64,000 bases of DNA from Macrostomum lignano (Eukaryota): assembly GCA_002269645.1 (NCBI GenBank), contig NIVC01001895.1, positions 122,772-186,771 of the forward strand, read 5' to 3'. The position numbers were made by a program, and so were the translations under genes. This document shows, one piece after another, positions 1 to 36,052 of this stretch; the stretch's first letter is position 1, and each line of letters begins with the position of its first letter. The notes under the pieces were generated by a model. That model was not told the DNA's origin. It made no database searches and saw nothing but the letters and a program-made list of their open reading frames with translations.

Positions 1-807
1 GCTATGCGTAAAATCATCTTAGAAAATGGAAACAACTCGACTCATTGATTTTGAGAGCTCATTATATCATTCTGTTACCCATTTTTTACTAGTCATCAAG
101 CTGAGAATGATAATATAGATTCATTTAAACCAATGAGATCACCTGTGCTATTTTTATGATTTATAGGCATGTGTTATACACTGTACATGTGCAATATTGT
201 ACGTAAATTTTTTATTATATAAACATAGAATTAGTATTTTCTATACGAAAAGCTTTATGACTATCAATATAGAGCTATAATAAAAAGTAAGTATATATAA
301 TATCAAAAGATAAACATTGGGTCTCTTGTATTAAAAGCAATTTTTGTGTTGAAAAAGAAAAGCCTTCTACTATCTCCGTAAATGCATTTATAGTCGTTTT
401 CACGACAAACCTCAAAAAACAAACTACACGTACATAATGTATATGAATAGCATTGGGCATAGGCTATAAGACTCATGTATATTTATTAGATTCGCCATGT
501 TTTGTCAGTCGGCCATTACGTAACTGCAAATAAATTTAAAACAACATTCTACAGTACATGTACATACATGAAAAATGTATAAAAGTTTACACATCGATCA
601 GTGCTTTCTCACTGAAATTGCCACCTGCTGCAAGTGTAAAAAAGTAAAACAAAATATAAAGAAAAATATAAAAAATAGAAATTGGTACACAGTATAGGTA
701 AAATTAGTGTAATAAAGGCTAGAAAAAAGTACACACAGTACTCCTCAATTTAAGTTCTGTATAAAAGCGCCTATGTACATGCACATTGTACAGAAGGTTC
801 CAGAGCA

Positions 808-2457
808 TTAAGTCTTGGCCAGCTTCATCGGCCGGGGCACGTGACCGGCTGGCGGCTGTCTCGACTTCGGCCCCATCCGAGCGGGAACCATCGGCTGTGG
901 CGGCGGCCGCGGCTTCGGTGGCGGCGGACGCGGCGGTGGCACCCGTTTCGGCTTCGCCTTGCCTTTCAGCTTGAACCTCAGCTCTGAAGATCGATGGGTT
1001 GATACAGAGGCAGCTGCAGTGGAGATTTCCTGATGCAGTATGACACTCGGTTGAGACTTAATTTATAACCTTTTGCATATTATTGGGGTATTATGAACCA
1101 TTGTTATTGGGGTTGTAGCCAAGTGGTTTGATCGAGTGTCGGACTCACGACTGAAAGGTCGGCGGTTCGATTCTCGACCCATTTGGAACAGTTTTAGCCC
1201 TTGAGCAAGACACTTAACTCAGCATAAATATTGCTCCAGTTCACCCAGCTGTAAAATGGGTGCCAGCATTAGCTGGGGTAATTAAGGGTGTGTGAGGGGA
1301 CCCCCCCCAATCCTCCTTGGACTGAACAGCCGTACGCTGCCTTCAGATGCGCCGCGCAATAGCTGCGACTGAGCTGTCGGTTGCACATCTGCCCGTTAGG
1401 ACAGGTGTAAACAATTATTATTGGGGAAACAGCAGGGTATTATTGGGGTATTGTGAGAAACAGCAGGGTATTATTGGGGGGTATCGAGGGAAACAGCAGG
1501 GTATTATTGGGGTATCGAGGGAAACAGCAGGGTATTATTGGGGGTATCGAGGGAAACAGCAGGGTATTATTGGGGGTATCGAGGGAAACAGCAGGGTATT
1601 ATTGGGGTATCGAGGGAAACAGCAGGGTATTATTGGGGTATCGAGGGAAACAGCAGGGTATTATTGGGGTATCGAGGGAAACAGCAGGGTATTATTGGGG
1701 GTATCGAGGGAAACAGCAGGGTATTATTGGGGGTATCGAGGGAAACAGCAGGGTATTATTGGGGGTATCGAGGGAAACAGCAGGGTATTATTGGGGGTAT
1801 CGAGGGAAACAGCAGGGTATTATTGGGGGTATCGAGGGAAACAGCAGGGTATTATTGGGGGTATCGGGGGGAACAGCAGGGTATTATTGGGGGTATCGAG
1901 GGAAACAGCAGGGTATTATTGGGGGGTATCGAGGGAAACAGCAGGGTATTATTGGGGGGTATCGGGGAGAAACAGCAGGGTATTATTGGGGTATCGAGGG
2001 AAACAGCAGGGTATTATTGGGGGTATCGAGGGAAACAGCAGGGTATTATTGGGGGTATCGGGGGAAACAGCAGGGTATTATTGGGGGTATCGAGGGAAAC
2101 AGCAGGGTATTATTGGGGGGTATCGAGGGAAACAGCAGGGTATTATTGGGGGGTATCGAGGGAAACAGCAGGGTATTATTGGGGGGTATCGTGAGAAATA
2201 GCGGGGTATTATTGGGGTATCGTGAGAAACAGCAGGGTATTATTGGGGGTAACAGGGTGAATTTTTCGAATCGATCTTTATAGCAAGCAAGGCAGAGAAG
2301 AAATGAGTTATTCAGTTAGAAAAAATATTTACAATCGGTACTCACTCGGTTTCGCAGTGACTTTCAGCAATCGCCTATGGCAAGCATCCGACTCTTCAGC
2401 GATGATTGACAGCAGGACAAGGCAGAATAGCGGAAGAAGCTTTAATAGTAGACTCAT
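808..2457 (-). CDS. Small secreted Pro/Lys/Arg-rich cationic peptide precursor (cluster gene 1), 2 coding exons, ~95 aa
   Basis: Exon 2457-2346 (112 nt, donor A|GTGAGT) reads MSLLLKLLPLFCLVLLSIIAEESDA-CHRRLLKVTAKP, a signal peptide followed by Cys. Phase-1 join to acceptor TTCAG|983 gives KLRFKLKGKAKPKRVPPPRPPPPKPRPPPQPMVPARMGPKSRQPPAGHVPRPMKLAKT* (TAA 810-808). GC-rich sequence ends at this stop. Confidence 0.62.
1109..1419 (+). mobile_element. tRNA-derived SINE with CORE-like central domain
   Basis: Pol III A box TAGCCAAGTGG (1116-1126) and B box GGTTCGATTC (1164-1173). Then CCTTGAGCAAGACACTTAAC...CAGTT...CTGTAAAATGGG, resembling the MIR/CORE domain, and an (ATT)n tail. A near-identical 3' part recurs at 29941-30127. 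Confidence 0.8.
1420..2252. repeat. Minisatellite, 31-33 bp unit (TATCGAGGGAAACAGCAGGGTATTATTGGGG), intronic
   Basis: About 26 head-to-tail copies that vary in G-run length; lies in the intron of cluster gene 1. Confidence 0.95.
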
Positions 2458-3096
2458 TGTGCCAATTAGTGATCTTTGATCTAGCTCGATCTTGTTCACA
2501 AGCATAAAATGTAGGAACCTTACTAGATCTGTTTGCTGAAGCAGAAGAAATTTCTCAGCTTAAACCATAGACAGAAAAATTCTACAAAAAAAACTCGGAT
2601 ATTGCGTGCATTTCTACTAGCAAGTAGAGTAGTTAAAATTTACATCTTTTTTAACTTACCGTTGAAAAAAGTAGAAAATTAATCAATATTGCCAAATTGA
2701 CATGAAGCCAATTGCATTAATAAAAACTGACAAAAACCACATATTACAGACTCAAAGTGCCGCATCGGGTACTTTGTACTTTTGTTTACTTTTGCAAGCG
2801 TTACTGGGGTTCGCACACCATTGCTACTTTTGTAGGGAAACTTAATGAAAAAAGCAGTTTACTACTTTGATACTTTAGAATAGGTTATATTCTCAATACA
2901 GTAGTATATCATGCATTTTAACTAACTTCGTCTTCTATCTTATTTGATATAGTAAAAAATTGAAACCTCAGCATTTACTGCCGGTTGGATATCAGAGGGT
3001 AGTGCCAGTCTGCTAGAGTGAGTAATTAACTTTGACAGTCTCTGATGATTGACAGGTCCACAGCACATTGGGTTGCCCCCTGATTGCTCAGCTGCA

Positions 3097-5226
3097 TTAC
3101 GTTACAATGTGGAGACTGTCCTGAGCTGTAAGAGTTATTTTAGGTCAGTGAATAATGCGAAGTTCCAACAAAATGGTTGCCGTGCAGTCAGTGGGGTGTC
3201 AGTGAGGTGTCAGTGCAGTCAGTAGGGTGTCAGTGCAGTCAGTGGGGTGTCAGTGGGGTGTCAGTGCAGTCAGTAGGGTGTCAGTGCAGTCAGTGGGGTG
3301 TCAGTGAAGTCAGTAGGGTGTCAGTGCAGTCAGTGCAGTCAGTGGGGTGTCAGTGCAGTCAGTAGGGTGTCAGTGCAGTCAGTGCAGTCAGTGCAGTCAG
3401 TGAGGTGTCAGTGCAGTCAGTGCAGTCAGTAGGGTGTCAGTGCAGTCAGTGGGGTGTCAGTGCAGTCAGTAGGGTGTCAGTGCGGTCAGTAGGGTGTCAG
3501 TGCGGTCAGCAGCAGAAGCACTCACAGGTTTTAAATGCTTTTGAAGAAGCTTTGTTTGCATCATCACGGGCCTTCGAAGCTGTAATGATTTTATTTTCCG
3601 AGTTTTTACTTTTACGATGCAGTTTAGTATGCAATAAAGACAAACTGTATGCGATAGACTCTAATGAAAAAAAATTTACCATCTTTAAAAGTTTTCATTG
3701 CTTTGCCACTGCCCACATTCTGGAGGTTCTTCGCCTTTTGAGCTGAAATTTTGGTAGGCAAAGGTGAGCTGTGTTACCCGAGCAGTTTGTCAGGTGAGCG
3801 GTGTGTCAGGTGAGTGGTGTGTCAGGTGAGCGGTGTGTCAGGTGAGTGGTGTGTCAGGTGAGTGGTGTGTCAGGTGAGTGGTGTGTCAGGTGAGTGGTGT
3901 GTCAGGTGAGTGGTGTGTCAGGGGATTTGTGTGCCGGTTCTAGTTTTTGAGGAATCAAGTCTTGAAATCGCAAATAGCCCCAGCTGTCTCACTTTTTTTG
4001 AAGGCCTTGGCTTTAGCGGCGTTCTCAGCCAACCGGGCTTTGTGGGCTGCAGGAAAACAAAATTAAGGGTGTCGGTGCAATTAGTGAAGATGTCAGGCGG
4101 ATTAAGTAGGGTGTCGCTAAAACTAGTTAGGATTTTGAACTAGAGTTAGACACGTTTTCTCAAGATATGCAAAAGAAATTACCTTTATTGAAATTTTTCA
4201 TAACTTTATGGCTGCCCAAATTATTTGTACGAGGCACTGAAAAATAAAAATACTGGTTCACTAAGTTTAAAGATAGCTTTGAAATATTGATAGAAGTAGA
4301 ATGATTTTATGGTAGAAAAGCCAGTAGGGAGTGACACCCAGGACGCATTCAAATAACACAGTAATCAGTGGAGTGACACAGGAGTCAATGGAGTGACATA
4401 GTAATCAGTGGAGTGACACATTAATCAGTGGAGTGACACAGGAGTCAGTGGAGTGACACAGGAGTCAATGGAGTGACATAGTAATCAGTGGAGTGACACA
4501 GGAGTCAATGGAGTGACATAGTAATCAGTGGAGTGACACATGAATCAGTGGAGTGACACAGGAGTCAATGGAGTGACATAGTAATCAGTGGAGTGACACA
4601 ATAATCAGTGGAGTGACACAGGAGTCAGTGGAGTGACATAGTAATCAGTGGAGTGACACAACAATCAGTGGAGTGACACAGGAGTCAGTGGAGTGACATA
4701 GTAATCAGTGGAGTGACACATGAATCAGTGGAGTGACACAAGAGTCAGTGGAGTGACACAGGAGTCAATGGAGTGACATAGTAATCAGTGGAGTGACACA
4801 TGAATCAGTGGAGTGACACAGGAGTCAGTGGAGTGACACAGGAGTCAATGGAGTGACATAGTAATCAGTGGAGTGACACATAATCAGTGGAGTGACACAT
4901 GAATCAGTGGAGTGACACAGGAGTCAGTGGAGTGACACAGGAGTCAATGGAGTGACATAGTAATCAGTGGAGTGACACAGGAGCCAGTGGCCGGGGTGAC
5001 ACAGGAGCCAGTGGAGTGACACAAGAGTCAGTAGAGTAACACAGGAGTCAGTGGAGTGACACAAGAGTCTGTGGAGTGACAGAGCAGTGTACTGAACCAG
5101 CAGCAACTTACCTTGCTTAAATCGCTTTAATCCTTTCGGGCAGGCAGACGTCAGAGTGGCATCTTCCATGAGCAGGATGAGCACAACAGTTGACAGTATA
5201 GAGATGCATCCTGTTTTGTGCAACAT
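3097..5226 (-). CDS. Secreted Lys-rich modular peptide precursor (cluster gene 2), 6 exons including four symmetric 54-63 nt exons, ~122 aa
   Basis: Exons 5226-5112 (MLHKTGCISILSTVVLILLMEDATLTSA-CPKGLKRFKQ), 4236-4183 (VPRTNNLGSHKVMKNFNK), 4046-3993 (AHKARLAENAAKAKAFKK), 3742-3680 (TQKAKNLQNVGSGKAMKTFKD), 3579-3526 (ASKARDDANKASSKAFKT), 3125-3097 (SQDSLHIVT*). All introns are GT-AG and phase 1; internal exons are multiples of 3. Confidence 0.7.
3180..3510. repeat. Intronic minisatellite of GTCAGTGCA / GTCAGTGGGGT units
   Basis: Interspersed 9- and 11-bp variant units between the last two exons of gene 2. Confidence 0.9.
3795..3920. repeat. 16-bp tandem repeat CAGGTGAGTGGTGTGT
   Basis: About 8 copies in an intron of gene 2. 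Confidence 0.9.
4360..5085. repeat. 20-bp minisatellite (CAGTGGAGTGACACAGGAGT and variants)
   Basis: About 36 copies in the first coding intron of gene 2. Confidence 0.95.
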
Positions 5227-7287
5227 TTTCGCGAGTCAAATTCAACTATATTGAATTTCAACTGACCTTTCTGGTTTATCAAATTCGGTTTCTTGCGCAA
5301 CAGATCGATAATATTTAAGAGTCGAAAGCGATTTAAAAAGTAATTCCGTACTTTCACCCTGCATATATTGCGAGCATGTGCTTGGACATAAAATAGAATA
5401 CTAATAAATAAAGGTTTGCAGCTTCTGCAGCGGCTATTTGTCTATGTGTGAAAGTACGGCATTCTGAGCTTCTTGTGATGCTGGTGCTTGTCTATGGCTA
5501 GGACCAAAAAAATCGAGCTTCTGGCGATCCTGTTATGTTATTCATCCATGGTCAAAACCTAAAGTGCCATAGACAAAATCATGGTGGAGACTTTCGGTTA
5601 ACAGTAGAAAGACCATGGGGGTGTATTTCAAATACACACATTTTTCTTTTGTCTGGATCTCCGAGAATATTCAACCAATTGCCATCAAAATACAGAACAC
5701 GGGCTAAAATTTTCCGCTCTATTCGACGAAGCAACTCTGAGAATCACGAAAAATCGGCATCGTTGAGATATTCAACGATTCTCCTCGGGGTGTCCGGTGG
5801 CAAAAACCACCAACATTGGCAAATTTTTTCTGTTCACAAAATCTCATCTTGAAACCACGTCGGCTCAGGAAGCTATGCATATTAGTCGTAAAGGCCTTTC
5901 TTCTCAGCATCCCAGGAACCAGGGTCCCCTTCATCACTGTCTGGAGCATCGGCGGCGACCGTCAGGACCTTCAAAAAAAGCATCCGATCGGCATCGCAGA
6001 GACGGCTGCGTTCCCAAAACTGAAATGGAAGAATCCTCTTCTGCATTCAGCGTTCAGTCAGCAGACATAATCGGTGAATGAAATGGACGACGGCGACCCT
6101 CTAGGTTGACCTGTAGACATACAAGCGACCTTCGGGACCTTCAACGGAGTGCCACCTTGCGGCCCCGACTAACTGGCATCCCCAACATCGTGAATTTTCT
6201 GTCAAGGCACCAAACCAGGCATGTCTGCATGTTATACAATGGTCCTGCACCATGTTCAGCATTCAGCTCTATCTGGACGACCTCCGGCACCCTCAACGGA
6301 GTGCCACCACGCGACCCTGACGAGCGAACACCCCCAACATCGTAATCTGTAACTCTCCAATTTAATATGGTGGAAAAGCATTGTATAATATGCAAACATG
6401 CCTGGTTTGGTGCCTTGATAGAAAGAGCAGGATGTTGGCGTTAGCGGTGTCAGCTCATCGGGGCCGCGTGGTGGCACTCCGTTGAAGGTCCCGAAGGTCG
6501 CTTGTATGTCTACAGGTCAACCTAGAGGGTCGCCATCATCCATTTCATTCACCGATTATGTCTGCTAACTGAATGTTGCATGCAGAAAAGGATTCTTCCG
6601 TTTCAGTTTTGGAAACGCAGCCGTCTCTGCGATGCCGATCGGATGCTTTTGTTGAAGGTCGTGACGGTCGCCGCCGATGCTCCAGACGGTGATGAAGGGG
6701 ACCCCACCCTGGTTCCTGGGATGCTGAGAAGAAAAGCCTCTCCGACAGATGGACCCAGATTATTGAGCCAATATGGATTCACCATAAAGGTTTATACAGT
6801 GTAGTGTTGGTTGTCCTTGCCACCAGTGTCTTCGACAAGAATCGTTGAATATCTCGACGATGCTGACGTCGGATGACTTTGAAAGTTAATTCGTTGGAAA
6901 GGGGGGGGGAAATTTTGATCCAAATGGTGGACTTTTACGAAAATCGGTTATTCGGTTTGCGAGCTATGGTGAAATTGATTGTGTGTATTTGTAATACACC
7001 CCCATGGTCTTTCCCCATGGGGAAAATAGCGTGGTCTTTCTACTGTTGGGCTGCGCCCTTCCAGTGTGTATGTACTCGTACTTTTGTTTTCAGTTTTCAT
7101 GCCACCCCGCCCCGTCCCCCGTCTCGCGCCCGGGCCAGGGTTTGTGAGAGGCGTAAGTCTCAACCCTGGCCTAGCCCTTTGCACCCAGCCCCCGGCCCAA
7201 TCTCTGTCCAATCTGGGTGCCGACCCTACCCCCCCCCCTTCCTCGTTGCCCGCCTCACCCTGGGGCTGCTCGTATTGGCTGGCTGGT

Positions 7288-8321
7288 CGCTCGTAGTGGC
7301 GCGAGCGATTTTTGATCACTGGATTGCGCACTTTGGTTGTCCTGAATTTCTAGTCACCGATAAGGGCACCAATTTTGAGTCGGCTTTGATGAAGCAGTTG
7401 TGTCGGTTGCTTGCCGTTAAGAAATGCAGAACGTCCTCCTATCACCCGATGGCTGATGGTCAGGCTGAGAGTTTCAATAAGACGTTGAAGTCAATGATCA
7501 AGTGCAGGATGAGTGAGTCGGTGGGCGAAGGAGACTGGGAGGATCTGATCCACCCGTCTCTCATGGCGTACCGTAGCAGCGTTCACAGAGGCACGGGGTA
7601 CACCCCGTACTACATGCTGTACGCCAGGGAGATGCGGCTTCCAGTGGACATTGGAACCTTGCCTGAGTCCATTCCTGCCAGTGCTCCGGCGTATGTTCAG
7701 TCATTAGGTAATAGTCTGGCTGAGGCTCATTCGCAGGTGCGGACCAACCTGCAGCAGTACCAGAGGAAACAGAAAGTGCTGTACGACTCAAGGGTGCGAG
7801 GCCCGGCCATAGAAGTTGGGGATGCCGTCCTAGAATACTCGCCTGCGCTGCAGGCAGGGGAGGCAGCCAAGTTCCATTGCAATTGGAAGGGGCCGGCGAA
7901 GGTGTTAGAGAAGATATCCGATTTGAATTACCGGGTAAAGCACGCCAATAGGGGAAAGAGCAAAATAGTGCATTATAATAATTTGCGAAAAGTATCCGAG
8001 CGGCCTGAGCAGTTCAGGTTGATGAATAGGCATACGGCAGTGCAGCGCCGGTCGGCGCATCCGCCTGAGCCGGCAGGGTGCAGACAGGAGCCCGCGGGGC
8101 CGGCGACTAAAGAGCCGGAACTTGAGGAGGAGGAGGAGTTTTACTCGTATGTGGTGCCACCAGTTGCCGTTGGGCCTCGGCATGGGATAGTAGGGCCGGG
8201 AACGCCAGTTGCACCATGCGCACCGGTGGCTCCAGCGGCGCCAGCCGTGTCTCCGCGCAGACTGCGCGAGCGTCGGGGTGTGCCCCCAGCGTATTACGGG
8301 AATCCGGTATTGTATCGTTAA
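7288..8321 (+). pseudogene. Retroviral-type integrase C-terminal remnant (pol) with GPY/F motif
   Basis: FGCPEFLVTDKGTNFES (second D), YHPMADGQAESFNKTLK (E) and WKGPAKVLEKISDLNYRV (GPY/F). The N-terminal zinc finger and first catalytic D are removed by the deletion. Confidence 0.88.
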
Positions 8322-8661
8322 TTCGCAGTGGGCTCACAAGGCGGTCGTCATAAATTGATTTTTAATATGCACTTGTATTAATGCCTCCACGCTGTTGTCT
8401 ATGGTAGAAAGCCTAAAATAACCTAAAATGAAAAAAAATGATACAACCCCAAAGCACAAAAAAATTCATAAAATGGAACGCATGAAAAGCACATAAAAAA
8501 ACATTAAATGTATTAAAATTACAAAATATGCTAGGCAAGAAGCGTTCTCAATCGTATTGTAAAGTAAACATGTCATGGGATGGGTCAGGCCAGGGTCACA
8601 GTTGCTAGTCCGCAAGGCATAGGTAGTGATTGGGTTTAAATGTCATCATTGCAGGAGGACC

Positions 8662-9612
8662 ATGTCGTCGCCAACGACACCGACTGATTTGTATGGCGTG
8701 TTAGGCGTGGGTCGGACTGCTAACTCTGCGGAGATTGAGGCAGCGTGTAGTCGTCTGTACTCAAAGCGGCCCCGCGTCTGTCCTGCCGAGGTAGAGTCTC
8801 CGGAGTCTCAGCGAGACGTGATGGCGATGTGCGTTTTATCTGACCCAGTGTTTCGGGAAGTATACGATCGGGTTGGAGAGGCAGCGTGTCAAGGGGTGTT
8901 AAAGTACGCCTACTTTTTCAATCCTCCCCCTGACGTTGAGTTGCCCGAGCAGGTCAGGTTAGCTTTGGCTAGTCTTAAGGGAAGCGCCGCAGGGGAAGCT
9001 CCAGTTCACGCGGAGATCCCAGCCGAGTTATTGGCTCCGGCTGCGCTTGCTGAGTGTAGGCGGCTGAGGGGTGCGCTGCTGGCGCGGTTGAGGGCTGGGG
9101 ATAGTGAAGGAGCTTGCCTGGTGGTTCAGGAGGTGGCGAGGTTTCTTGATGGGGCTGGTGTGAGTGTGCCTGAGCAGTTGTCTAGATTCTTAGCAGTGTC
9201 TGTGTCGTTTCTGTGCAATCAGTATGGGCGGAAGAGAGGTTCTGGTGGTGGTTCCGGGAGGTGTCGGAGGGTCCCGCCTTCGGTGCTGCAGGCGGCGTTT
9301 GAGTGCGTGTTGTTGGCTGTGCGGGGTTTTGAGCTGTGTGAGTTGGGGGGTCCCTTGTTGGGGAGGCTCCGGGGTCTGTCTCTCTTAGTGGATCCTGGCC
9401 TCGCGCGGCGCCCGGAGGAGGGGAGTGACGGGCCGCACCTTTCGCAGACTCCGCTGACGGCCCAGCGCGACTTGGCGACCGAAGAGTTAACGGGTGTCGA
9501 CCCCGAGCAAGTACGACCGGCCGACACGGTCCAGGAGGTCTCCCCCGTGACGACCCGAATCAGCGCAAGGTCAGCTCGGCTAAGCGTCTCGTCGATGCAA
9601 AGGCATACCTAA
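8662..9612 (+). CDS. LTR-element accessory ORF with N-terminal J-domain-like (DnaJ) fold lacking HPD
   Basis: TDLYGVLGVGRTANSAEIEAACSRL...CVLSDPVFREVYDRVGE matches J-domain helices (DxYxxLGV...AYxVLSDPxKRxxYDxxG), with RPR at the HPD position. ATG 8662 is preceded by an acceptor-like CATTGCAG at 8647-8654. Confidence 0.6.
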   Translation: MSSPTTPTDLYGVLGVGRTANSAEIEAACSRLYSKRPRVCPAEVESPESQRDVMAMCVLSDPVFREVYDRVGEAACQGVLKYAYFFNPPPDVELPEQVRLALASLKGSAAGEAPVHAEIPAELLAPAALAECRRLRGALLARLRAGDSEGACLVVQEVARFLDGAGVSVPEQLSRFLAVSVSFLCNQYGRKRGSGGGSGRCRRVPPSVLQAAFECVLLAVRGFELCELGGPLLGRLRGLSLLVDPGLARRPEEGSDGPHLSQTPLTAQRDLATEELTGVDPEQVRPADTVQEVSPVTTRISARSARLSVSSMQRHT

Positions 9613-10337
9613 CGAGGCTGGGCCGGTCGATTCAGCCCGAGGACCTTCGTGGCGTGCGTCGATGTCTAGCGGCTGTAAACTCGCCGTACTGCCTGCGTCT
9701 AGAATGTCCCGTTGTCCGACCACTGCTGCAAGACCGACGGATCGTGTTCGCCCTGGGCCTGAAGGCCAGTGCTGCACCGTGGTGGCCATCGCTGCGAGAC
9801 GATGTACGACGATTTCTAGCGGGTAGCTGGCCGCGTGTCGTGGCGGTCGGCGAAGTCGAGCTCAATTGGGACGCTGAGAGGTCGCAGCGCCAGGACCAGT
9901 TAACGGCGGCGATGGAGCAGTTCTTGCTTGCCAAGGAGTTCGGCCTGCCGGTTTTGTTCCGAGTTGAAGGCGGCGAACCTGCCTGGGCGGTCGCCCTAGG
10001 ATTCCTCCGGCAGCCGGAGTTTCAAGCGATGAGCGTCATGCTGGCCGAGGACCTGGACTTGCCGGAGGCCGTCGAGGCCGCGCTGGTGAGCAAGTGCCAC
10101 GGGGTCTTCTTCGAGGTGTCCGCTCGGTGCCGAGGATCCCCGCGAGCGGTCCAACGGGCTAAGCGTCTCCCGCGGCAGCGCCTGCTAGTGACATCGGCCG
10201 CACCGTTTGGTGGAGACCCCAAGGACCCGACAGCCATCAAGTTCGTGCCGGAAGCCCTAGCGGACAGTGAATGTGATCGCAGGTACTGGACTCGACTGTT
10301 TGCGACCAACTGTAGTAGATTTTTTGGCCGATTGTAG
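9429..10337 (+). CDS. TatD-family TIM-barrel protein with degenerate metal ligands (pseudo-nuclease), inside the LTR element
   Basis: Frame open from 9429. LVDAKAYL (cf. LIDTHCHL), FALGLKA (GxHP), VVAVGEVELN (VVAIGEIGLD), LAKEFGLPVLFR (LAKELxLPVxxH), LPRQRLLVTSAAPF (IPLDRLLxETDAPY), TNCSRFF (TENARRLF). There is no ATG before the domain; it overlaps the J ORF in the -1 frame over 9429-9612. Confidence 0.72.
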   Translation, partial: RAAPFADSADGPARLGDRRVNGCRPRASTTGRHGPGGLPRDDPNQRKVSSAKRLVDAKAYLTRLGRSIQPEDLRGVRRCLAAVNSPYCLRLECPVVRPLLQDRRIVFALGLKASAAPWWPSLRDDVRRFLAGSWPRVVAVGEVELNWDAERSQRQDQLTAAMEQFLLAKEFGLPVLFRVEGGEPAWAVALGFLRQPEFQAMSVMLAEDLDLPEAVEAALVSKCHGVFFEVSARCRGSPRAVQRAKRLPRQRLLVTSAAPFGGDPKDPTAIKFVPEALADSECDRRYWTRLFATNCSRFFGRL

Positions 10338-10577
10338 AGTAGAATTGCGTTCTTAAGCCCGTTTTCAATTTTTGCGTACGCAATAGTTTGTGTCCCGTTT
10401 TCATTTTTTCGTTTTTGTTTTTTGTAATGCCGGCGATATCCACGCGTCGCGTCAAAGTTTTTCTGTTATTTTTCGGCCGTCGTTTTTTGAATTAACTTTT
10501 TTTCAGACTTGCTTGTTCATGCGTTGCTTTTTGCTTGACATCCCCTTTCTCCTCTTCTTTTTCTTGGAGGGGGAGGA

Positions 10578-11286
10578 TGTTGGGCTGCGCCCTTCCAGTG
10601 TGTATGTACTCGTACTTTTGTTTTCAGTTTTCATGCCACCCCGCCACGTCCCCCGTCTCGCGCCCGGGCCAGGGTTTGTGAGAGGCGTAAGTCTCAACCC
10701 TGGCCTAGCCCTTTGCACCCAGCCCCCGGCCCAATCTCTGTCCAATCTGGGTGCCGACCCTACCCCCCCCTTCCTCGTTGCCCGCCTCACCCTGGGGCTG
10801 CTCGTATTGGCTGGCTGGTTGATAAGCCGGCTGGGCCCCAGGGTTTGGCTCGCCCTCTCCAGTCTGCCCCACCCCTTCCCCCTTTTTTGTGTATTATTTA
10901 AATGCTAGCCCTGAGCGGGCTGCGCTCCACGTTGGCTCTCTATTGGTGTCCGCTTCGTTCTTACTGTTTTTGCGTTCAACGGCGTACCTCTGCCTTCGCG
11001 TGCCAATACTGCTTCGGGCCAATAAACGCTTCGTTAGTAACTCGATATATCAAGAGGAGGTGAGCTCGAGCTTTCGTTCTTCTGGGTTGCCGCGTGGGGC
11101 CGGGATCTGCAGGGACCTGGGAACGGTGAACTCTCGCCGATCCCAGGGTGTTCGGTCAGGCGAACTCTCGCCGAACCGAGCGAGACAGGGTAGGAATAGC
11201 CGGGGTGAGGGCTGGGACCGGGGTGTCTCAGGCGGGGAGGGCCCGAACCTTGACCCGTCCAGCGGCCATTAGGCCGAGACACAACA
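10578..11286 (+). repeat. Intact 3' LTR (709 bp)
   Basis: TG...CA termini, preceded by the PPT and followed by TSD CTAC; the first 244 bp are duplicated at 7044-7287. Confidence 0.9.
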
Positions 11287-11950
11287 CTACTGTTAACCGC
11301 ATAGGTTTATTGCTTTAACTACTTTTAAAATTTTAAAATCTGGATTGGAAAGAATGCTAGAGAACTAACTAACTACCTAACTAAAGAGCTTTTTTGATGA
11401 GTTGCCCTTATATAATCCTCAGAGATATTTAACTCTTGTAAGAGGTAAATACTTGAAGACTTGAATTACTTGAGGTAAACACGTATTGTTAAATCACATC
11501 ACCAGAGGTAAACTACTTGCAGTAATATTATAAACAATAATTGAACTCGAAAATAAGAAGAAACAAATTCATTTTAAAGTTTGTAAGTGTTATCTGATTA
11601 TACTCAACTGTGCAGAGTATATTTGTTATACAAAGAAAAAGCCTAAAAAGTTTAAAAAAGTTTTCTATTGCTATGTAAATCTGTGAAAAAAACTTGGCTT
11701 ATGTACACTGCACTGCATGTTTAACAAGGACCACAGATACAAGAAGAGCTATAGATATTCACTCGCAAAAAAGAGGTCGACTACACGGTCCACTCTTTTC
11801 AGTAGATATTAGCGTTTGTGCCTAAAATAAATTGTCTTACCGACTCCAGACTGCCAGGCATAAGCGAGTAAGAGAAAATAGGCTGATAAGACAGTTTGGC
11901 TTTCCCCTTGCCCGGTTGCGGCCGACTCTGACCTCTTTTCCTTACTGCTC

Positions 11951-12300
11951 TCTCATTGGCTGAGCAAGATTGGGCCTGCCGTAGACTGAATTTCGTCCGT
12001 TTATCTTTGACCTCTCTCATTGGCTGAGCCAGATTGGGCCTGCCCTAGACTGAATTTCGTCCGTTTATCTTTGACCTCTCTCATTGGCTGAGCCAGATTG
12101 GGCCTGCCCTAGACTGAATTTCGTCCGTTTATCTTTGACCTCTCTCATTGGCTGAGCCAGATTGGGCCTGCCCTAGACTGAATTTCGTCCGTTTATCTTT
12201 GACCTCTCTCATTGGCTGAGCCAGATTGGGCCTGCCCTAGACTGAATTTCGTCCGTTTATCTTTGACCTCTCTCATTGGCTGAGCCAGATTGGGCCTGCC
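11951..12300. repeat. 64-bp tandem repeat, ~5.5 copies, each containing an AGCCAAT box on the minus strand
   Basis: Copies start at 11951, 12015, 12079, 12143, 12207 and 12271 and are nearly identical. Confidence 0.92.
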
Positions 12301-12764
12301 CGCTGCTGCCCGCTTGAGTCTACATCGAGTTAAATGCTTGCTATTCATTCTTAACCCCATAAGCTTAATCAGGCCGCAAACCCAGAGGAAGGAAAAAAAT
12401 TAGCTGCCACATTATATTTAAAAGACACTGCGCAAACAAACTACTGACAAAGAGTAGACGCTCTACTTTTTTCACAAGTTTATTTGGGATTGATACAAGT
12501 ATATCTAGTAATTCTAGCGTCTGTGATTATGACCAACTGCCTATTTGTATACACAATATTTCTGTAAAATTAATACTGTAACCCGCTTAATACTGTAGGT
12601 TTTTGCGACCAAATAAATATTTGAACTGCAGAAGGTCTGTTTATCTTAGCTGTGCTGTAGTGTACAACAACGTGGCGGTAGAAAGATACTATTCATTATT
12701 TGCTGACAAACTGCTGACGCAGTGGAAAGCAGCGAGTGATGTCAGCTAGGACTCAGTTGATTCT

Positions 12765-15700
12765 CTAAGCGCCAACTGCAAGTTTTTACGGGGAAAATTT
12801 ATTAGGTGAGAACGTGAATTTTCCAGATTTTCAGAACTATTTTTACATTAGGTGTGTCAGGAGTCAGGACTAGTTTCTGAAATGTGTCAGGACTAGTTAC
12901 TCAAACGTGTCAGGACTAGTTTATAAAACGTGTCAGGACTAGTTTCTAAAATGTGTCAGGACTAGTTTCTAAAATGTGTCAGGACTAGTTACTCAAATGT
13001 GTCAGGACTAGTTTATAAAACGTGTCAGGACTAGTTTCTGAAATGTGTCAGGACTAGTTACTCAAATGTGTCAGGACTAGTTTATAAAACGTGTCAGGAC
13101 TAGTTTCTGAAATGTGTCAGGACTAGTTTCTGAAATGTGTCAGGACTAGTTACTCAAACGTGTCAGGACTAGTTTATAAAACGTGTCAGGACTAGTTTAT
13201 AAAACGTGTCAGGACTAGTTTCTGAAATGTGTCAGGACTAGTTACTCAAACGTGTCAGGACTAGTTTATAAAACGTGTCAGGACTAGTTTCTGAAATGTG
13301 TCAGGACTAGTTACTCAAACGTGTCAGGACTAGTTTATAAAACGTGTCAGGACTAGTTTATAAAACGTGTCAGGACTAGTTTCTGAAATGTGTCAGGACT
13401 AGTTTATAAAACGTGTCAGGACTAGTTTATAAAACGTGTCAGGACTAGTTTATAAAACGTGTCAGGACTAGTTTATAAAACGTGTCAGGACTAGTTTATA
13501 AAACTTGTCAGGACTAGTTTCTGAAATGTGTCAGGACTAGTTACTCAAACGTGTCAGGACTAGTTTATAAAACGTGTCAGGACTAGTTTATAAAACGTGT
13601 CAGGACTAGTTTATAAAACGTGTCAGGACTAGTTACTCAAATGTGTCAGGACTAGTTTATAAAACTTGTCAGGACTAGTTTCTGAAATGTGTCAGGACTA
13701 GTTACTCAAATGTGTCAGGACTAGTTTATAAAACGTGTCAGGACTAGTTTCTGAAATGTGTCAGGACTAGTTACTCAAACGTGTCAGGACTAGTTTATAA
13801 AACGTGTCAGGACTAGTTTATAAAACGTGTCAGGACTAGTTACTCAAATGTGTCAGGACTAGTTTATAAAACGTGTCAGGACTAGTTTATAAAACGTGTC
13901 AGGACTAGTTTATAAAACGTGTCAGGACTAGTTTATAAAACGTGTCAGGACTAGTTTATAAAACGTGTCAGGACTAGTTTATAAAACGTGTCAGGACTAG
14001 TTTATAAAACGTGTCAGGACTAGTTTATAAAACGTGTCAGGACTAGTTTATAAAACGTGTCAGGACTAGTTTATAAAACGTGTCAGGACTAGTTACTCAA
14101 ATGTGTCAGGACTAGTTTATAAAACGTGTCAGGACTAGTTTATAAAACGTGTCAGGACTAGTTTATAAAACGTGTCAGGACTAGTTTATAAAACGTGTCA
14201 GGACTAGTTTATAAAACGTGTCAGGACTAGTTTATAAAACGTGTCAGGACTAGTTTATAAAACGTGTCAGGACTAGTTTATAAAACGTGTCAGGACTAGT
14301 TTATAAAACGTGTCAGGACTAGTTTATAAAATGTGTCAACTCGTCACAATTTTCTAATCGAGCCCACTTACCTTTAACGGAGCCAGCAGAAGGAACTGGA
14401 ATTATGATGATGTTTGGGATTAATTAATAAATAAATTGTTGGGATAGGGCTTCGAGTTAAATAAATAATATCTATAATTAAGCATGCATTTCGGAATGCA
14501 GTAAGTCAAAATTCACTTATAAGTCACTCATCTAATTAGTAACTCGTCTCATAAGTCACTCATAAGTCACTCACCCCCAGAGCTGAGAATTTTCGCGTTA
14601 GGAGCCTTTTGGGGTCTCCCTGAGGCCTTTGCCGCGGCTCTTCCAAACTTAGATTTGTGCAGTTTTGTCATCTCGGATTTTTCGACTGAAGAAATAATTA
14701 TGAGCATTAAGGGGCTTTGAGATAGAATCTGAGATAATCTACGAAAATATTTCAAAAAGTGGGTGTCAGACAGATTGGGTGTCAGACAGATTGGGTGTCA
14801 GATAGATTGGGTGTCAGACAGATTGAATGTCAGACAGATTAGGTGTCAGACAGATTGGGTGTCAGATAGATTAGGTGTCAGACAGATTGGGTGTCAGATA
14901 GATTGAATGTCAGACAGATTGGGTGTCAGATAGATTGAATGTCAGACAGATTAGGTGTCAGACAGATTGGGTGTCAGACAGATTGGGTGTCAGACAGATT
15001 GAATGTCAGACAGATTAGGTGTCAGACAGATTGGGTGTCAGATAGATTGGGTGTCAGACAGATTGAGTGTCAGACAGATTGAGTGTCAGACAGATTGGAT
15101 GTCAGACTGATTGGGTATCAGATAGATTGAATGTCAGACTGATTGGGTATCAGATAGATTGGGTATCAGATAGTTTGGGTGTCAGACAGATTGAGTGTCA
15201 GACAGATTGGATGTCAGACTGATTGGGTGTCAGATAGATTGGATGTCAGACAGATTGGGTGTCAGACAGATTGGGTATCAGATAGATTGGATGTCAGACA
15301 GATTGGGTGTCAGACAGATTATATGTCAGAATGTTGGCTCAATGTTGGAAATTTTAGCTCATTGTAATACGTGAAGGATCATAACAGTGAAAACATGAGT
15401 ATAATGATAAAATTGATATACTTACAATTTTTAAATTTTCTAAAAGCCTTGTTACCCTTCAGGACGCTTCTTTTGTAAACTGAAAAAATTGTAAGAGGAT
15501 AATTTTTTTAGTATAACATTGAAAAGAAATTTGAAGGCGCTGTGTACAGTACATTGAGGTGTTTGTGGTGTGTCTCGAAAGACATTGAGGTGTCTGTGGG
15601 GTCTCGGAATATATTGAGGTGTCTCAGAAGACATTAGAGGTTTGTTTGTGGGGTGTCTCGGAAGACATTGAGGTGTCTGTGGTGGGTCTCGGAAGACATT

Positions 15701-16173
15701 GAGGTGTCTGTGGTGGGTCTCGGAAGACATTGAGGTGTCTCAGAAGACATTAGAGGTTTGTTTGTGGGGTGTCTCGGAAGACATTGAGGTGTCTGTGGTG
15801 GGTCTCGGAAGACATTGAGGTGTCTCAGAAGACATTAGAGGTTTGTTTGTGGGGTGTCTCGAAAGACATTGAGGTGTCTGTGGGGGGTCTCGGAAGACAT
15901 TGAGGTGTCTCCTAAGACATTGAGGTGTCTTTGTGGGGTGTCTCAGAAAACATTTTTAGGTGTCTATGTGGGGTGTCTCAGAAAAAATTGAGGTGTCTGT
16001 GTGGGGGGTGTCTCAGAGTATTATTAAAAGGCAAAGCAACGCCACAGGTGAGATAACTTACGATTTTTGACGCCTCTCAGAGCCGCCCTGCAGGTGGAGC
16101 CGTTCTCTGTCCAGCACAGAAGCAGAAACAGGCAAACGAGCAGCAGCAGTTTCGAAAAAACGCACAATGACAT
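12765..16173 (-). CDS. Secreted Lys-rich peptide precursor (cluster gene 3) with two 24-nt micro-exons, ~93 aa
   Basis: Exons 16173-16062 (112 nt, MSLCVFSKLLLLVCLFLLLCWTENGST-CRAALRGVKN), 15479-15456 (LYKRSVLK), 14685-14575 (VEKSEMTKLHKSKFGRAAAKASGRPQKAPNAKILSSG), 14395-14372 (VPSAGSVK), and a tentative last exon 12775-12765 (VGA*). All introns are phase-1 GT-AG. The last exon is the least certain. Confidence 0.65.
12850..14338. repeat. 23-bp minisatellite (CAGGACTAGTTTATAAAACGTGT plus two variant types), ~64 copies
   Basis: Regular 23-bp period; variants TTCTGAAAT and TACTCAAA are interspersed on the left and the array becomes homogeneous on the right. Confidence 0.97.
14760..15330. repeat. 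16-bp minisatellite GTCAGACAGATTGGGT
   Basis: About 35 copies in an intron of gene 3. Confidence 0.95.
15553..16020. repeat. Compound minisatellite built on GACATTGAGGTGTCT(GTGGTGGGTCTCGGAA)
   Basis: Alternating ~31, ~20 and longer units in the first intron of gene 3. Confidence 0.9.
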
Positions 16174-17061: not shown

Positions 17062-17634
17062 TTAGCCAGCGCCAGACAGCGCAGCGGGCAGCAGTTTGGC
17101 GCCATTGATTCCGTGAACGGACACTCGACCCGGACGCACCATGAGGCCGTGTTGCTGCTGACAGGTGAAGTATCTCTTGCCGAGGACTCGGCCGTCGTTT
17201 CGACCCAGCGGTTTTCGTAGTTCAACGCCCAGCCAAACACCGTCGGCAAAGTGCACCCGGCCGATGAAGCGGACGGTGCCCATCAGATTGCCGCAGAGCA
17301 CCTGAAAAGATAAATTAGCAATCCATTTTATTTTATTAGCATCTGAGCGATAGATTAGCAATCCATTCTACTCTATTAGGTTAAGAGATATAGATTAGGA
17401 ATCTATTTTATTTTATTATATTCGAGCGATAGATTAGCAATCCATTTTTATTTTATTAGGTTCGGAAAGATAGATTAGCAATCTATTATATTTTATTAGG
17501 TTCGGAGACAGATTAGCAATCCATTCTATTTTATTAGGTTCGGAGACAGATTAGCAATCCAATTACACATTCATGCATTACAATACTGCAGTCACTATAC
17601 CTGTAATCCTTCGCGCAGAACAAGTGTTGCTTGT

Positions 17635-17696
<62 letters not shown>

Positions 17697-20600
17697 AGTG
17701 GCCGTGGCCTCTGCCTGCCTACCGGCGCACCTGTGCAGCCTGGCAGCAGACGCGAACACTCCGTGACCCTGCGGACAGTGGAAGTACCTTCGCCCCTCCA
17801 CGGATCCGTCATTTCTGCCCACCGCGTTGTCCAGCTCCACCCCGTACCAAACTCCCGGGGCGAAGTGGCACTCGCCAACGAACCGGACGGTGCCTCGACG
17901 TTGGCCGGCTACGATCACTCGGTCGCCGAGGGCGAAACTGTGCCGGGTTCGAACCCGGGCCTCCACGCCGCTGACGTCGATTGCGCCGCGATGGACCCGG
18001 GTGAAGCCGGACACGCGGCTCATGGGGACCAGCACCTGGCCGGGTCGGACACGGGGTCGGACACTTAATTCCTGGACTCTTGATTCCTGATAACCAATTC
18101 TCGGACACCATTCCTGAACACTTCATTCCCGGACTCTCCTTTCCTGGACACTTCATTCTTAGACACTCCATCTTTAAACACTTCATTCCCGGACACTTCA
18201 TTCCCGGACACTTCATTCCCGGACACTTCATTCCCGGACGCTTCATTCCTCCAGACATTTAATTCCCGGACAGTGCGGACACTTCATTCCCGGACACTTC
18301 ATTCCCAGAATCTTCATTCCCAGAATCTTCATTCCCAGACTCTCCATTTCTTCGGACGCTTTATTCCTGGAAATTTAATTCCCGGACATTTAATTCCCGG
18401 ACACTTAATTCCCGGACACTTCATTCCTGGACACTTCATTCCTACGGACACTTCATTCCCGGACACTTCATTCCTAGACACTTCATTCCTAGACACTTTA
18501 TCTTCAGACCCTCCATTCCCGGACACTCACCCCCCGGCCAGCCGGACACTGGAAGTATCTGACTCCGGACACGCAACCGTCGTGTCGGCCAGCCTGCGGC
18601 GTCTCGAGTTCAACTCCGGCCCAGACGCCTGGCGCGAATTCCACGGGGCCCCAGTAGCGGAGGGTGCCGGGCCGGGACCCAGCAACCAGGACTCGGTCGC
18701 CCAAGTTGGAAGGCGGCTGATCGGCTTGCTGCTGCGGTCTCTGCTGCGGCTGCCGCTGTGACTGCTGCTGCTGCTTCTGCAGTGCAGCCGCCTGATGTGT
18801 GATCAGAAGCGATAATTAGGATGATTCTTAGGGGATAATTGGGAAGATTCTTAGGTTATAATTAGGAAGATTCTTAGGGAATAATTATGGTGATACTTAG
18901 GGGATAATTAGGGAGATTCTTAGGGGGTAATTAGGAAGATTCTTAGGGGATAATTAAGGGTGATTGCGCCTTAATTTTTGTCCTTATTGTCATTAGGGGA
19001 CAATTAGGAAGATTATTAGGGGATAATTATAGGAAGATTCTTAGGGGATAATTAGGAAGCATCTTAGGGGATAATTAGGAAGCATCTTAGGGATAATTAG
19101 GAAGCATCTTAGGGGACAATTAGGAAGTTTATTAGGGGATAATTATAGAAAGATTCTTAGGGGATAATTAGGAAGCATCTTAGGGGATAATTAGGAAGCA
19201 TCTTAGGGGACAATTAGGAAGATTCTTAGGGGATAATTAGGGAAATTGTAAGGGGATAATTAGAGAGATACTTGGGGGTTATTTAGAGAGATTCTTAAGG
19301 GATAATTAGGGCGATTCTTAGAGAACAGTTAGGAAGATTTTTAGGGGATAATTAGGAATATACTTAGAGGATGATTAGGAATATTATTAGGGGACAATTA
19401 GGAAGATTCTTAGGAAATAATTAGGAAGATTCTTAGGCGATGAGTAGGGAGACTCTTAGAGGATAATTGGGGGTAGAATCTTAGGGGATAACAAGGGGAT
19501 AACTAGGGAGATTCTTAATACATCCAACTAAACGTGCTTCCCAGTGAAAGAAGAGGAGTGAAAGGCAAAGGCAAGGGAAGTCCAACCTCTTCAAACGCTG
19601 ACGAAGCCACCGAAGCGGTTGATGAAGCGGACGACAGCGGAGCTGCAGCCGCGGCAGCCGGCACCGAAGCGGTGGACGAAGCGGACAGCCGAGGCGGTCG
19701 CTCAGGCCGACTGCCAGCCAGTAAAGTGAGCAGTCTCGATCGGATCTCTCGATTCTCAGCCGAAGAGTTCGAGTTGAACAAACCAGAGGTCAGTTGAGGC
19801 AGGCAGTCGACGGGACGCCGGAGCAACTCGTCTGTGGCTGCCAGAGCTGCCTGACCTGCGCTGGAGACCAGCAGGCGGGCGCTGCCTTCGCTCAGGTGTG
19901 CAGCGGCCAGGTGCAGCGGGGTGGCGTCTTCGAACTCGGTGCATCTGATTGTGAAAGATGGCATGAATTGTTAAAGAGTCGGTTCTGAGTTCGAACTCTA
20001 TTATGACCGTTTACTATGAGTATGTTTGTACTTTAGTCTATGACCGGTTTCTATGAGTATGTTTCTACTTTAGTCTATGACCGGTTCTATGAGTATGTTT
20101 GTACTTTAGTCTATGACCGGTTTCTATGAGTATGTTTGTACTTTAGTCTATGACCGGTTTACTATGAGTTTGATTGTACTTAGTCTATGAAAGGTTTCTA
20201 TGAGTTTGTTTGTACTTTAGTCTATGGCTGGTTTTTGAGTTTGTACTTTAGTCTATAGCTGTTTTCTGAGTTTATACTTTAGTCTATGGCTGTTTTCTGA
20301 GTTTGTATTTTAGTCTATGGCTGGTTTTTAAGCTTGTACTTTAGTCTATGGCTGGTGTTTGAGTTTGTACTTTAGTCTATGGCTGGTTTTTAAGCTTGTA
20401 CTTTAGTCTATGGCTGGTTTCTGAGTTTGTAATTTAGTCTATGGCTGGTTTCTGAGTTTGTAATTTAGTCTATGGCTGGTTCTGAGTTTGTACTTTAGTC
20501 TATGGCTGGTTTCTGAGTTTGTACTTTAGTCTATGGCTGGTTTTTTAGTTTGTACTTTAGTCTATGGCTGTTTTCTAAGTTTGTACTTTAGTCTATGGCT

Positions 20601-23563: not shown

Positions 23564-23678
23564 CAAGACAGGCTGCTTCTTGAACAGACAAGCTCCTAAA
23601 TCAAGAAAGCGAGAGAAAAACACAAGCAAAAGCAAAGCAAGCAAACCTAACAAACCAGCAGACATTGTACAAGCGACA

Positions 23679-35273: not shown

Positions 35274-36052
35274 CTACTCGGCAGCCTTTTGGATCTCCAT
35301 GGGAACGTCCTTGATCTGCGGCGGCTGCTTGGCTGGCGGAGCCTCGAACGGCGCCTCGATGCACAGCTGGCCGTCCTGACTCAGCTTGCTGGCCACCTGA
35401 TCCAGCTTGGTGCCGGCGGGTAGCTGGAACTCTCTTTCCAGCCGCTTGTGGATCCGCTGCCCGTTCGACTCGTCCTTGTGCTCAGCCTCGACTCAGACGC
35501 GGTCGCCCTGCTGCTGGATGCGAATCTCGTCCAGCTTGAACTCGCGCACCGACAGCTCCGCCTTGAACCGCTTGGTGCCGTCGTCGGCCTCCACCAGCTG
35601 GCCGGACTGCAGGTCGCCTCGCAGCAGGCCGCGCAGCTCGTCCCACACCGAGTCACCCTGCCGCTGCTGCAGCTGCTGCTCCTTGAACGGCGCCTTCAGC
35701 ACCAGCATGCCGTCCTGGGTGAAGCCGCTGCTCAGCTTCTCAGCGTCCACCTCCTCCGGCAGGTCCACCGTCCGCTTCACCTCCGTCACGTCGTCGCCGT
35801 TCTCGAGTCGAGCCACGACGCGCACCTTTCGGTCCTGTCGCTTCACCGACACGTCCTTGGGCGAGAAGCCGCGAAGGTCGACAGTCCGGGACCAGTGGCG
35901 CGGTCGCTTCGGACCTCGGTGACACCACAGGTGCACCAGCGGGTCGTACTCAGGCGTCAGCCAGTCGTCCAGCTCGCTCATGGCTGTCACAAGCGGCAGC
36001 GCGTGCGAGAACAGCGTGAACACGTTCGAGAGCGACAGATCCAGAGCGACAT
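35274..36052 (-). pseudogene. Small HSP pseudogene (duplicate of 23679-24476)
   Basis: Near-identical to copy 1, but has a +2 frameshift after codon 5 (GGATCT-GTCGCTCT-CGAACG vs GGATCT-CCCCCA-CGAACG), a CGA>TGA nonsense at 35495-35493 in the second domain, a different C-terminus (MEIQKAAE*), and a ~150-bp promoter deletion. Confidence 0.85.

Follow-up and report, generated by a model that had tools for sequence, protein, structure and literature searches.

Three neighbouring genes for candidate secreted polycationic peptides in the flatworm Macrostomum lignano

The locus and its gene models

The DNA considered here is a 64-kb stretch of contig NIVC01001895.1 of the flatworm Macrostomum lignano, hereafter the window, in which three neighbouring genes, g1, g2 and g3, form a tandem, same-strand cluster on the minus strand and, to judge from their letters, encode small, secreted and highly cationic peptides. 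A previous sequence-only reading had placed three such genes at ATG codons 2457 (g1), 5226 (g2) and 16173 (g3), within positions 808-16173, and had given them a common first coding exon of 112-115 nt, hydrophobic signal-type leaders and phase-1 introns, all of which was borne out when the gene models were rebuilt from the letters of the minus strand. The first coding exons measure 112 nt in g1, 115 nt in g2 and 112 nt in g3, the hydrophobic cores of the leaders reach Kyte-Doolittle means of 3.0-3.6 over 11 residues, and the introns are GT-AG and of phase 1 in 10/10 cases across the three genes, with an A at position -3 of the ATG in 3/3. The precursors would be 95 (g1), 122 (g2) and 103 (g3, spliced form) amino acids long. 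M. lignano is a recent polyploid, which explains why two further copies of the cluster exist, one on NIVC01001916.1 (L001) and the other on NIVC01000169.1 (L002). The exons, with the features that accompany them, are as follows.

2457-2346, minus strand: coding exon 1 of g1, 112 nt, MSLLLKLLPLFCLVLLSIIAEESDACHRRLLKVTAKP, then a GTGAGT donor in phase 1; identical in L001 and L002.
2345-984, minus strand: intron of g1, phase 1, with a 32-nt minisatellite at 1424-2251 (about 26 copies) and a fragment like a transfer RNA (tRNA)-derived short interspersed nuclear element (SINE) at about 1150-1400.
983-808, minus strand: exon 2 of g1, 176 nt, Lys-rich and then with a Pro/Arg/Lys-rich tail, KLRFKLKGKAKPKRVPPPRPPPPKPRPPPQPMVPARMGPKSRQPPAGHVPRPMKLAKT, followed by the stop codon; AATAAA at 487-482.
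5226-5112, minus strand: coding exon 1 of g2, 115 nt, MLHKTGCISILSTVVLILLMEDATLTSACPKGLKRFKQ; an initiator-like TCAGT motif 39 nt upstream; part of GenBank PAA62839.1.
4236-4183, 4046-3993, 3742-3680, 3579-3526 and 3125-3097, minus strand: exons 2-6 of g2, an exact match to the annotated 122-amino-acid protein.
16173-16062, minus strand: coding exon 1 of g3, 112 nt, MSLCVFSKLLLLVCLFLLLCWTENGSTCRAALRGVKN; TCAGT 33 nt upstream and AATATA 86 nt upstream; intact in L001 and L002.
15479-15426, minus strand: exon 2 of g3, 54 nt, YKRSVLKGNKAFRKFKN.
14685-14575, minus strand: exon 3 of g3, 111 nt; a 16-nt minisatellite in the intron between exons 2 and 3.
14395-14372 and 12775-12765 (stop codon), minus strand: probable exons 4 and 5 of g3, with splice sites kept in L001 and L002.

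Exons 2-5 of g2 (54, 54, 63 and 54 nt) are symmetric, phase 1-1, and exon 6 is terminal. The 3′ end of g3 is uncertain, since the donor of exon 3 could also be read through to a TGA ending at about 14567, which would give a protein of about 94 amino acids; the spliced form is mildly favoured because an AATAAA lies at 12484-12479, 280 nt past its stop, and no such poly(A) signal is found within 200 nt of the read-through stop.

That the signal-exon pattern exceeds chance expectation was seen in a scan of both strands of the window for an ATG followed by an uncharged hydrophobic core and then by GTRAG within 80-150 nt. Five sites were found, namely those of g1-g3, all on the minus strand, in phase 1 and 112-115 nt long, and two in the long terminal repeat (LTR) copies of a retrotransposon, compared with an average of 0.75 sites in shuffled sequence. 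The LTR retrotransposon (about 7047-11287) sits between g3 and g2 in this copy only and is absent from L001 and L002; its direct repeats (7044-7236 and 10578-10770) are 99% identical, and its open reading frames (ORFs) show an integrase C-terminal domain and two weak matches, one DnaJ-like (E = 0.0012) and one TatD-DNase-like (E = 8e-6).

Most introns of g1-g3 are filled by a minisatellite of their own, whose unit measures 14-32 nt and is repeated up to 64 times; such arrays occupy introns 1, 3 and 5 of g2, and a 23-nt unit present in 64 copies lies between the probable exons 4 and 5 of g3. The arrays were located at 1424-2251, 3198-3509, 3788-3933, 4356-5081, 12863-14338, 14760-15320 and 15551-15998, as well as at 51623-59909, and many more are found among the genes neighbouring the cluster. 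On the transcribed strand their units contain much C and little G, and a CTGAC(AC) core similar to the branch-point consensus CTRAY recurs in several unrelated units. GC skew is positive at the minus-strand genes and negative at 54-60 kb, where a helicase gene lies on the plus strand. The tRNA-like, SINE-looking segment in the g1 intron carries a T-loop-like motif, GGTTCGATTC, on the plus strand; ARAGORN and Rfam, applied over the window, returned nothing and did not recognise this segment as a tRNA.

Leaders, mature peptides and relatedness

By the organization of their N-termini the three products look like classically secreted pre-peptides, with the n, h and c regions of a signal peptide and a candidate cleavage site of the (-3,-1) kind, which is ambiguous in g3. 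The N-terminus of g2, for example, has an uncharged hydrophobic core of 13-14 residues with a best 11-residue Kyte-Doolittle mean of 3.0. Each protein has exactly one Cys after this core (C26 in g1, C29 in g2 and C28 in g3), and according to the (-3,-1) rule, itself a rule of thumb, cleavage is best placed right before this Cys in g1 (after SDA) and in g2 (after TSA). Thus the single Cys that the sequence-only reading had set at the mature N-terminus is there in each protein, and its terminal position fits g1 and g2, with g3 ambiguous. In the L002 copy of g3 the substitution T27A changes the residues before the Cys to GSA. An N-glycosylation sequon, N-G-S/T, occupies codons 24-26 of g3 (16095-16103), directly before the single Cys, and would stay in the mature peptide only with an earlier cleavage, after C20 or T22.

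Counted from the Cys onward, the mature parts have these compositions.

g1: 70 amino acids, 21 Lys/Arg, 0 acidic, 20 Pro.
g2: 94 amino acids, 24 Lys/Arg, 5 acidic.
g3, spliced: 76 amino acids, 20 Lys/Arg, 2 acidic.
g3, read-through: 67 amino acids, 19 Lys/Arg, 3 acidic.

The figures for g1 and g2 agree with those given earlier, and those for g3 (66 amino acids, 16 Lys/Arg and 2 acidic) have to be replaced by one or the other of the last two lines. The resulting net charges of +21 (g1), +19 (g2) and +18 (g3) are as high as is expected of cationic alpha-helical antimicrobial peptides (AMPs). With 29% Pro and 30% Lys/Arg in its mature part, g1 also has the make-up of a proline-rich AMP, as far as composition goes, and its Lys/Pro/Arg-rich tail is likely to be extended or polyproline-II-like. 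For g2, AlphaFold2 run on the single sequence predicted disorder in the N-terminal part and, behind it, a pair of long helices at 45-83 and 87-121, each corresponding to one duplicated unit (see below); the block-mean predicted local distance difference test score (pLDDT) reaches about 90 in the helical segments, and the predicted template-modelling score (pTM) is only 0.26. The Lys/Ala-rich modules of 18 amino acids ending in K-x-F-K, which occur in g2 and g3, are predicted to be helical.

How closely the three genes are related was judged from leaders and mature parts separately. The leaders of g1 and g3 align as MSL..KLL.L.CL.LL with z = 5.3 against plain shuffles, a value that falls to z = 2.6 (p = 0.018) against shuffles preserving the n, h and c regions, and the aligned residues are encoded by different codons. 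The leader of g2 resembles those of g1 and g3 no more than is expected of signal peptides in general (p = 0.43 for g1-g2 and p = 0.38 for g2-g3, region-preserving shuffles), and a nucleotide alignment of the three first exons and promoter regions gave no convincing homology. The similarity reported for the leaders of g1 and g3 is marginal, and the formula of a conserved leader with hypervariable cargo overstated leader conservation, as only these two leaders align.

The mature regions, on the other hand, had been called unrelated, which is right for the Pro-rich tail of g1, for which no relation to g2 or g3 was seen, and wrong for g2 and g3, whose mature regions are faintly similar (p = 0.0035). 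Exon 2 of g3 is a 54-nt phase 1-1 exon like those of g2, and Lys/Ala-rich 54-nt modules occur in both genes (GNKAFRKFKN in g3 exon 2, compared with SHKVMKNFNK, SGKAMKTFKD and SSKAFKT in g2). Within g2, exons 2 and 3 are duplicated as exons 4 and 5 (z = 11), and a pattern following the Cys, C-x-x-x-L-[KRL]-x-[VF]-[KT], is common to all three proteins. It is mainly by architecture and position that g1-g3 are tied together. A common origin by tandem duplication followed by rapid divergence is plausible, no more.

Annotation, homologues and genomic copies

The three genes had been described as unannotated-looking, and this stands for g1 and g3 but not for g2, which is already in GenBank as a hypothetical protein. 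Its six-exon model is identical over 122/122 residues to PAA62839.1 (BOX15_Mlig016063g2), whose locus on NIVC01001895.1 is the exact reverse complement of positions 1-15226 of the window, and it is 98% identical over its full length to the M. lignano hypothetical protein BOX15_Mlig016063g1. The Mlig_3_7 GenBank annotation was built from assembled transcripts alone (StringTie and de novo assembly, followed by TBONE and TransDecoder in turn), with a filter that removed transcripts judged to be non-coding and those overlapping repeats (PMC5730564). Since the annotation derives from assembled transcripts alone, all five junctions of g2 have transcript support. At the positions of g1 and g3 no gene is called in the GenBank annotation at any of the three genomic copies. 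TransDecoder has a default minimum of 100 amino acids, below which g1 (95 amino acids) and the read-through form of g3 (about 94) fall, so that their absence from the annotation is uninformative. Both are probably small-ORF genes that the annotation lacks.

Two UniProt models from another, older gene-prediction set bear on the same exons. A0A1I8GNM7 (P0002; 65 amino acids, for which no contig placement was obtained) consists of g2 exons 1, 3 and 6, and A0A1I8I613 (P0004; 114 amino acids) of g2 exons 1 and 3 joined to exon 2 of g1 as its last exon; as all exons here are in phase 1, neither model disrupts the frame. They may be prediction artefacts, or they may reflect true exon skipping and read-through between adjacent genes, which is plausible given that about 7% of M. 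lignano transcripts are multi-gene precursors (PMC5730564). These models hint at combinatorial splicing, which is possible because the internal exons are symmetric in phase 1-1 (about 18 amino acids each) and the three genes lie on one strand. A combinatorial peptide factory, in which exon skipping and inter-gene read-through yield a set of different secreted polycations from one locus, is a distinctly unlikely extension; its products would pair by disulfides through the N-terminal Cys and would make up a previously undescribed flatworm host-defence or adhesive system.

The UniProt entries A0A267EM70, A0A267EPT2, A0A1I8GNM7 and A0A1I8I613 all bear the automatic name "60S ribosomal protein L29", which UniRef repeats, and g2 would accordingly be a homologue of the ribosomal protein eL29. 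The Lys/Ala-rich composition is the only feature in which g2 is like eL29. Neither a match to Ribosomal_L29e (PF01779) nor an eL29 chain among the PDB matches was found at E <= 10, although the PDB holds eukaryotic ribosomes in large number, no eL29 appeared among 1.84 billion representative proteins at E <= 0.001, and a hydrophobic signal peptide at the N-terminus cannot be reconciled with a ribosomal protein of the cytosol. The eL29 identity of g2 is effectively refuted by these negative Pfam, PDB and HMMER results together with the signal peptide.

The same exhaustive HMMER search (E <= 0.001) returned for g2 only the 65-amino-acid isoform or model of the same gene, protein searches with g1 and g3 gave no database match, and a scan of Joint Genome Institute (JGI) metagenomes found nothing. 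The matches in Pfam (PRIMA1, E = 0.43; Uteroglobin, E = 0.068; NOP5NT, E = 3.6) and in a PDB sequence search (Sen34, a tape-measure protein and Cas11a) were all insignificant, with no known structural protein family among them, and a full-text search of the literature for the gene identifier and for M. lignano antimicrobial peptides yielded nothing relevant. With no relatives seen outside M. lignano, the lineage-specific character proposed by the sequence-only reading holds, and g1-g3 appear to be taxonomically restricted genes, confined to the species or to the genus, in searches that did not extend to other Macrostomum genomes or transcriptomes.

In L001 and L002 the three genes are all there in the same order, with every start, stop, splice site and reading frame intact. 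The three copies differ by 0.7-1.3% in unique flanking DNA. The coding sequence of g1 is identical in all of them (0/288; p = 0.02 against the background of L002).

The hypothesis that g2 alone is real, with g1 and g3 as decaying duplicates, as non-coding DNA or as not independent genes, has to be weighed against this intactness. In one variant, exon 2 of g1 would serve read-through transcripts of g2 as an alternative last exon, as P0004 has it in joining g2 exons 1 and 3 to this exon, and the apparent first exons would be relics. The absence of g1 and g3 from the transcript-derived annotation at all three loci and from the protein databases fits such a hypothesis, as does the finding that conservation of the exons, taken together, does not exceed that of the flanks. 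Against it, g1 and g3 have undamaged frames, starts and GT/AG sites in 3/3 copies, with the coding sequence of g1 100% identical; their signal-peptide exons match that of g2 in length and phase, which is very unlikely by chance; the annotation pipeline dropped transcripts that it judged non-coding or that overlapped repeats (PMC5730564); and P0004 stems from the older prediction set. On balance the g2-alone hypothesis is unlikely.

The cluster is flanked by a CAP-Gly/ankyrin gene on one side and by a PLAT-domain gene on the other. The former shows a CAP-Gly domain exon (E = 5e-27) and then a long polyglutamine run at 17595-18035, minus strand, upstream of g3, and the latter lies just beyond position 1 of the window. 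A multi-exon Ski2/Mtr4-like DEAD-box helicase gene extends over 50963-59194 on the plus strand (51-59 kb). A large inverted duplication is made up of 23580-24476 (plus) and 35493-36137 (minus), 32932-33291 (minus) and 36879-37238 (plus), and 31471-32904 and 37263-38818. It carries a gene for a small heat-shock protein with tandem domains (HSP20, E = 2e-24), an exact look-up of whose ORF returned no record, together with an ORF that looks secreted and contains Cys (MTLATVATA...) and with minisatellites of 30 nt and 28 nt that match between the two arms.

Possible functions and known parallels

The interpretation favoured here is that g1-g3 are real, secreted, lineage-specific polycation genes, to which a probability of roughly 0.55 is given for all three together; taken singly, g2 is likely to be such a gene, and g1 and g3 are somewhat less securely so. 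Exon 1 would encode a signal peptide for the endoplasmic reticulum, then a few neutral or acidic residues, a single Cys and the beginning of the basic region, and the remaining phase-1 exons would encode low-complexity polycations. The peptides would enter the secretory pathway, lose their leader at or near the Cys and act extracellularly as mature polycations (+18 to +21) by charge-driven binding to polyanionic targets, and the single unpaired Cys would permit disulfide homo- or heterodimers, or tethering to a matrix. As to the purpose of this, host defence at a secretory epithelium or gland is suggested as the most probable single function, a tentative choice, ahead of a polycation of adhesive, mucus or granule and then of a seminal-fluid protein. 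In host defence, g1 would act like the proline-rich AMPs, and g2 and g3 like non-amphipathic Lys-rich polycations.

A number of observations weigh against this interpretation. No match to a known antimicrobial peptide or toxin was obtained in the Pfam and PDB searches. The maximum 18-residue hydrophobic moment is not above that of shuffles (p = 0.90, 0.43 and 0.12), and the mean hydrophobicity of the peptides is negative, unlike that of classic membrane-lytic helical AMPs. No transcript evidence was found for g1 or g3, Mlig016063 did not occur in the accessible parts of the supplements of the M. lignano papers searched for expression data, and the peptide strings were absent from the supplements of a seminal-fluid screen, which hold little sequence. 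The start codon of g1 is uncertain owing to a second in-frame ATG upstream, at 2505, with no stop before the ATG at 2457; a start there would prepend a charged extension of 16 residues to the leader and bring the protein to 111 amino acids. In addition to the lack of better conservation of the exons already mentioned, the substitutions in g3 lie above the local background (3-4 non-synonymous and 2-5 synonymous codon differences), and purifying selection on g1-g3 is neither demonstrated nor excluded, a comparison of copies that differ by 0.7-1.3% only having no power for selection. Finally, a phase-1 intron behind the signal-peptide exon is a widespread feature of genes for secreted proteins, so that the architecture common to g1-g3 speaks only modestly for descent from one ancestor.

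The classic amphipathic-helix antimicrobial peptide was accordingly rejected as a model for g1-g3, there being no significant hydrophobic moment and the mean hydrophobicity being negative. The missing amphipathicity argues against the helical, pore-forming antimicrobial type, and not against other kinds.

A different function for such polycations would be structural or adhesive, in a gland of the adhesive organs, a cement or shell gland, the rhabdites or the mucus, where the peptides would bind acidic glycans or surfaces, or condense anionic granule cargo, and the Cys would cross-link them into a matrix. M. lignano itself provides the precedent, since its adhesive Mlig-ap1 works via extremely Lys/Arg-rich regions, and adhesion and release in the animal depend on charge, both being blocked by heparin or cationic peptides, for instance SRKPRRKNRKSRKP (PMC6410801). 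The Lys/Arg/Pro composition of g1 is similar to these regions, and non-amphipathic peptides suit a polyanion binder better than a membrane-lytic peptide. The sequences show no similarity to Mlig-ap1 or Mlig-ap2, however, the M. lignano proteome yielded no other match when searched exhaustively with g2, the flatworm adhesives described so far are far larger proteins, and no tail-specific expression was found in the search for it. An adhesive or structural role is possible but rather doubtful.

Alternatively, g1-g3 would encode seminal-fluid or other reproductive secretory proteins of the prostate gland that change rapidly under sexual selection. In M. lignano at least 76 transcripts are prostate-limited, signal peptides occur in 38/65 of those for which a reading frame is predicted, and recognisable domains are absent from most (PMC5977470). 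The orphan, secreted and fast-changing profile of g1-g3 would fit this group, as would the elevated substitutions in g3. The g2 identifier was not found in the accessible parts of the germline and neoblast gene lists, the missing peptide strings in the sequence-poor screen supplements point the same way, and nothing positive ties the cluster to tail or prostate, which leaves a reproductive role unlikely, more so than an adhesive one.

Neuropeptide or peptide-hormone precursors cut at dibasic sites are likewise small and secreted, and KR or RR pairs do occur near the N-terminus (HRR and, before V, KPKR in g1; LKR before F in g2; YKR before S in g3). Dibasic sites are expected by chance in sequences with 25-30% Lys/Arg, though, and inspection revealed no repeated peptide units flanked by G-[KR][KR], a single FGR in g3 being the sole candidate. 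Protein and Pfam searches gave no match to known flatworm neuropeptide families. The neuropeptide-precursor explanation was rejected on these three grounds as very improbable.

If a host-defence or adhesive role is borne out for g1-g3, M. lignano, a model for regeneration, bioadhesion and sexual selection in which transgenesis is possible, would have in them one of its first described families of secreted effectors specific to the lineage. Apart from that, the public annotation appears to miss small-ORF secreted genes (below 100 amino acids and with repeat-filled introns), the automatic ribosomal-protein name of g2 in UniProt is wrong, and three short, easily synthesised polycations are now on hand for antimicrobial or polyanion-binding assays. 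On present evidence, the locus counts as an unremarkable cluster of orphan secreted peptides, such as invertebrate genomes commonly contain, and it can be set beside several known systems.

In the preprodermaseptin and conotoxin families a conserved signal exon precedes a hypervariable mature peptide, and the leader is highly conserved at the nucleotide level. The cluster resembles these types in its separate signal exon followed by a phase-1 intron and in its divergent cationic mature parts, and departs from them in that leader similarity is marginal (p = 0.018), is lacking for g2 and involves different codons. The proline-rich AMPs, among them PR-39, Bac5/Bac7, apidaecin, drosocin and oncocin, have active peptides of 18-45 amino acids. 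Like them, g1 has 29% Pro and 30% Lys/Arg, KPRPPP, PPRPPP and VPRPM motifs of the PRP type, no acidic residues and no amphipathic helix; unlike them, it has more Lys than Arg, 70 amino acids, an N-terminal Cys and a Lys-rich segment, it has neither a cathelin nor an insect-type pro-region, and it gave no PDB sequence match.

The Lys/Arg-rich regions of Mlig-ap1 belong to the same species and are likewise secreted and extremely Lys/Arg-rich, and the electrostatic mechanism of this adhesive is documented (PMC6410801). Mlig-ap1 is, however, a giant multidomain protein, with Lys/Arg-rich regions that total over 3,600 amino acids and with lectin, vWD and other domains, whereas g1-g3 encode 95-122 amino acids without domains or detectable homology to it.

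By kind, the closest parallel is with the AMP families of Hydra (arminins, periculins and the NDA-1/Hym357-like peptides). These peptides share no sequence similarity with g1-g3 and are bipartite, with an anionic pro-piece, a cationic part and often several Cys, whereas g1-g3 have a short acidic patch before a single Cys, no anionic pro-region and three members only; antimicrobial activity has been demonstrated for the Hydra peptides, and for g1-g3 it would be a proposal. What the two groups appear to have in common is their genetics: the Hydra genes are genus-restricted, tandemly duplicated and signal-peptide-bearing and encode charged AMPs (PMC10945409), and g1-g3 would be like them in their taxonomic restriction, their small signal-peptide precursors and their biased charge. 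The Hydra paralogues form tandem clusters that arose by duplication and diverged fast (PMC10945409), a history to which that of g1-g3 may be likened.

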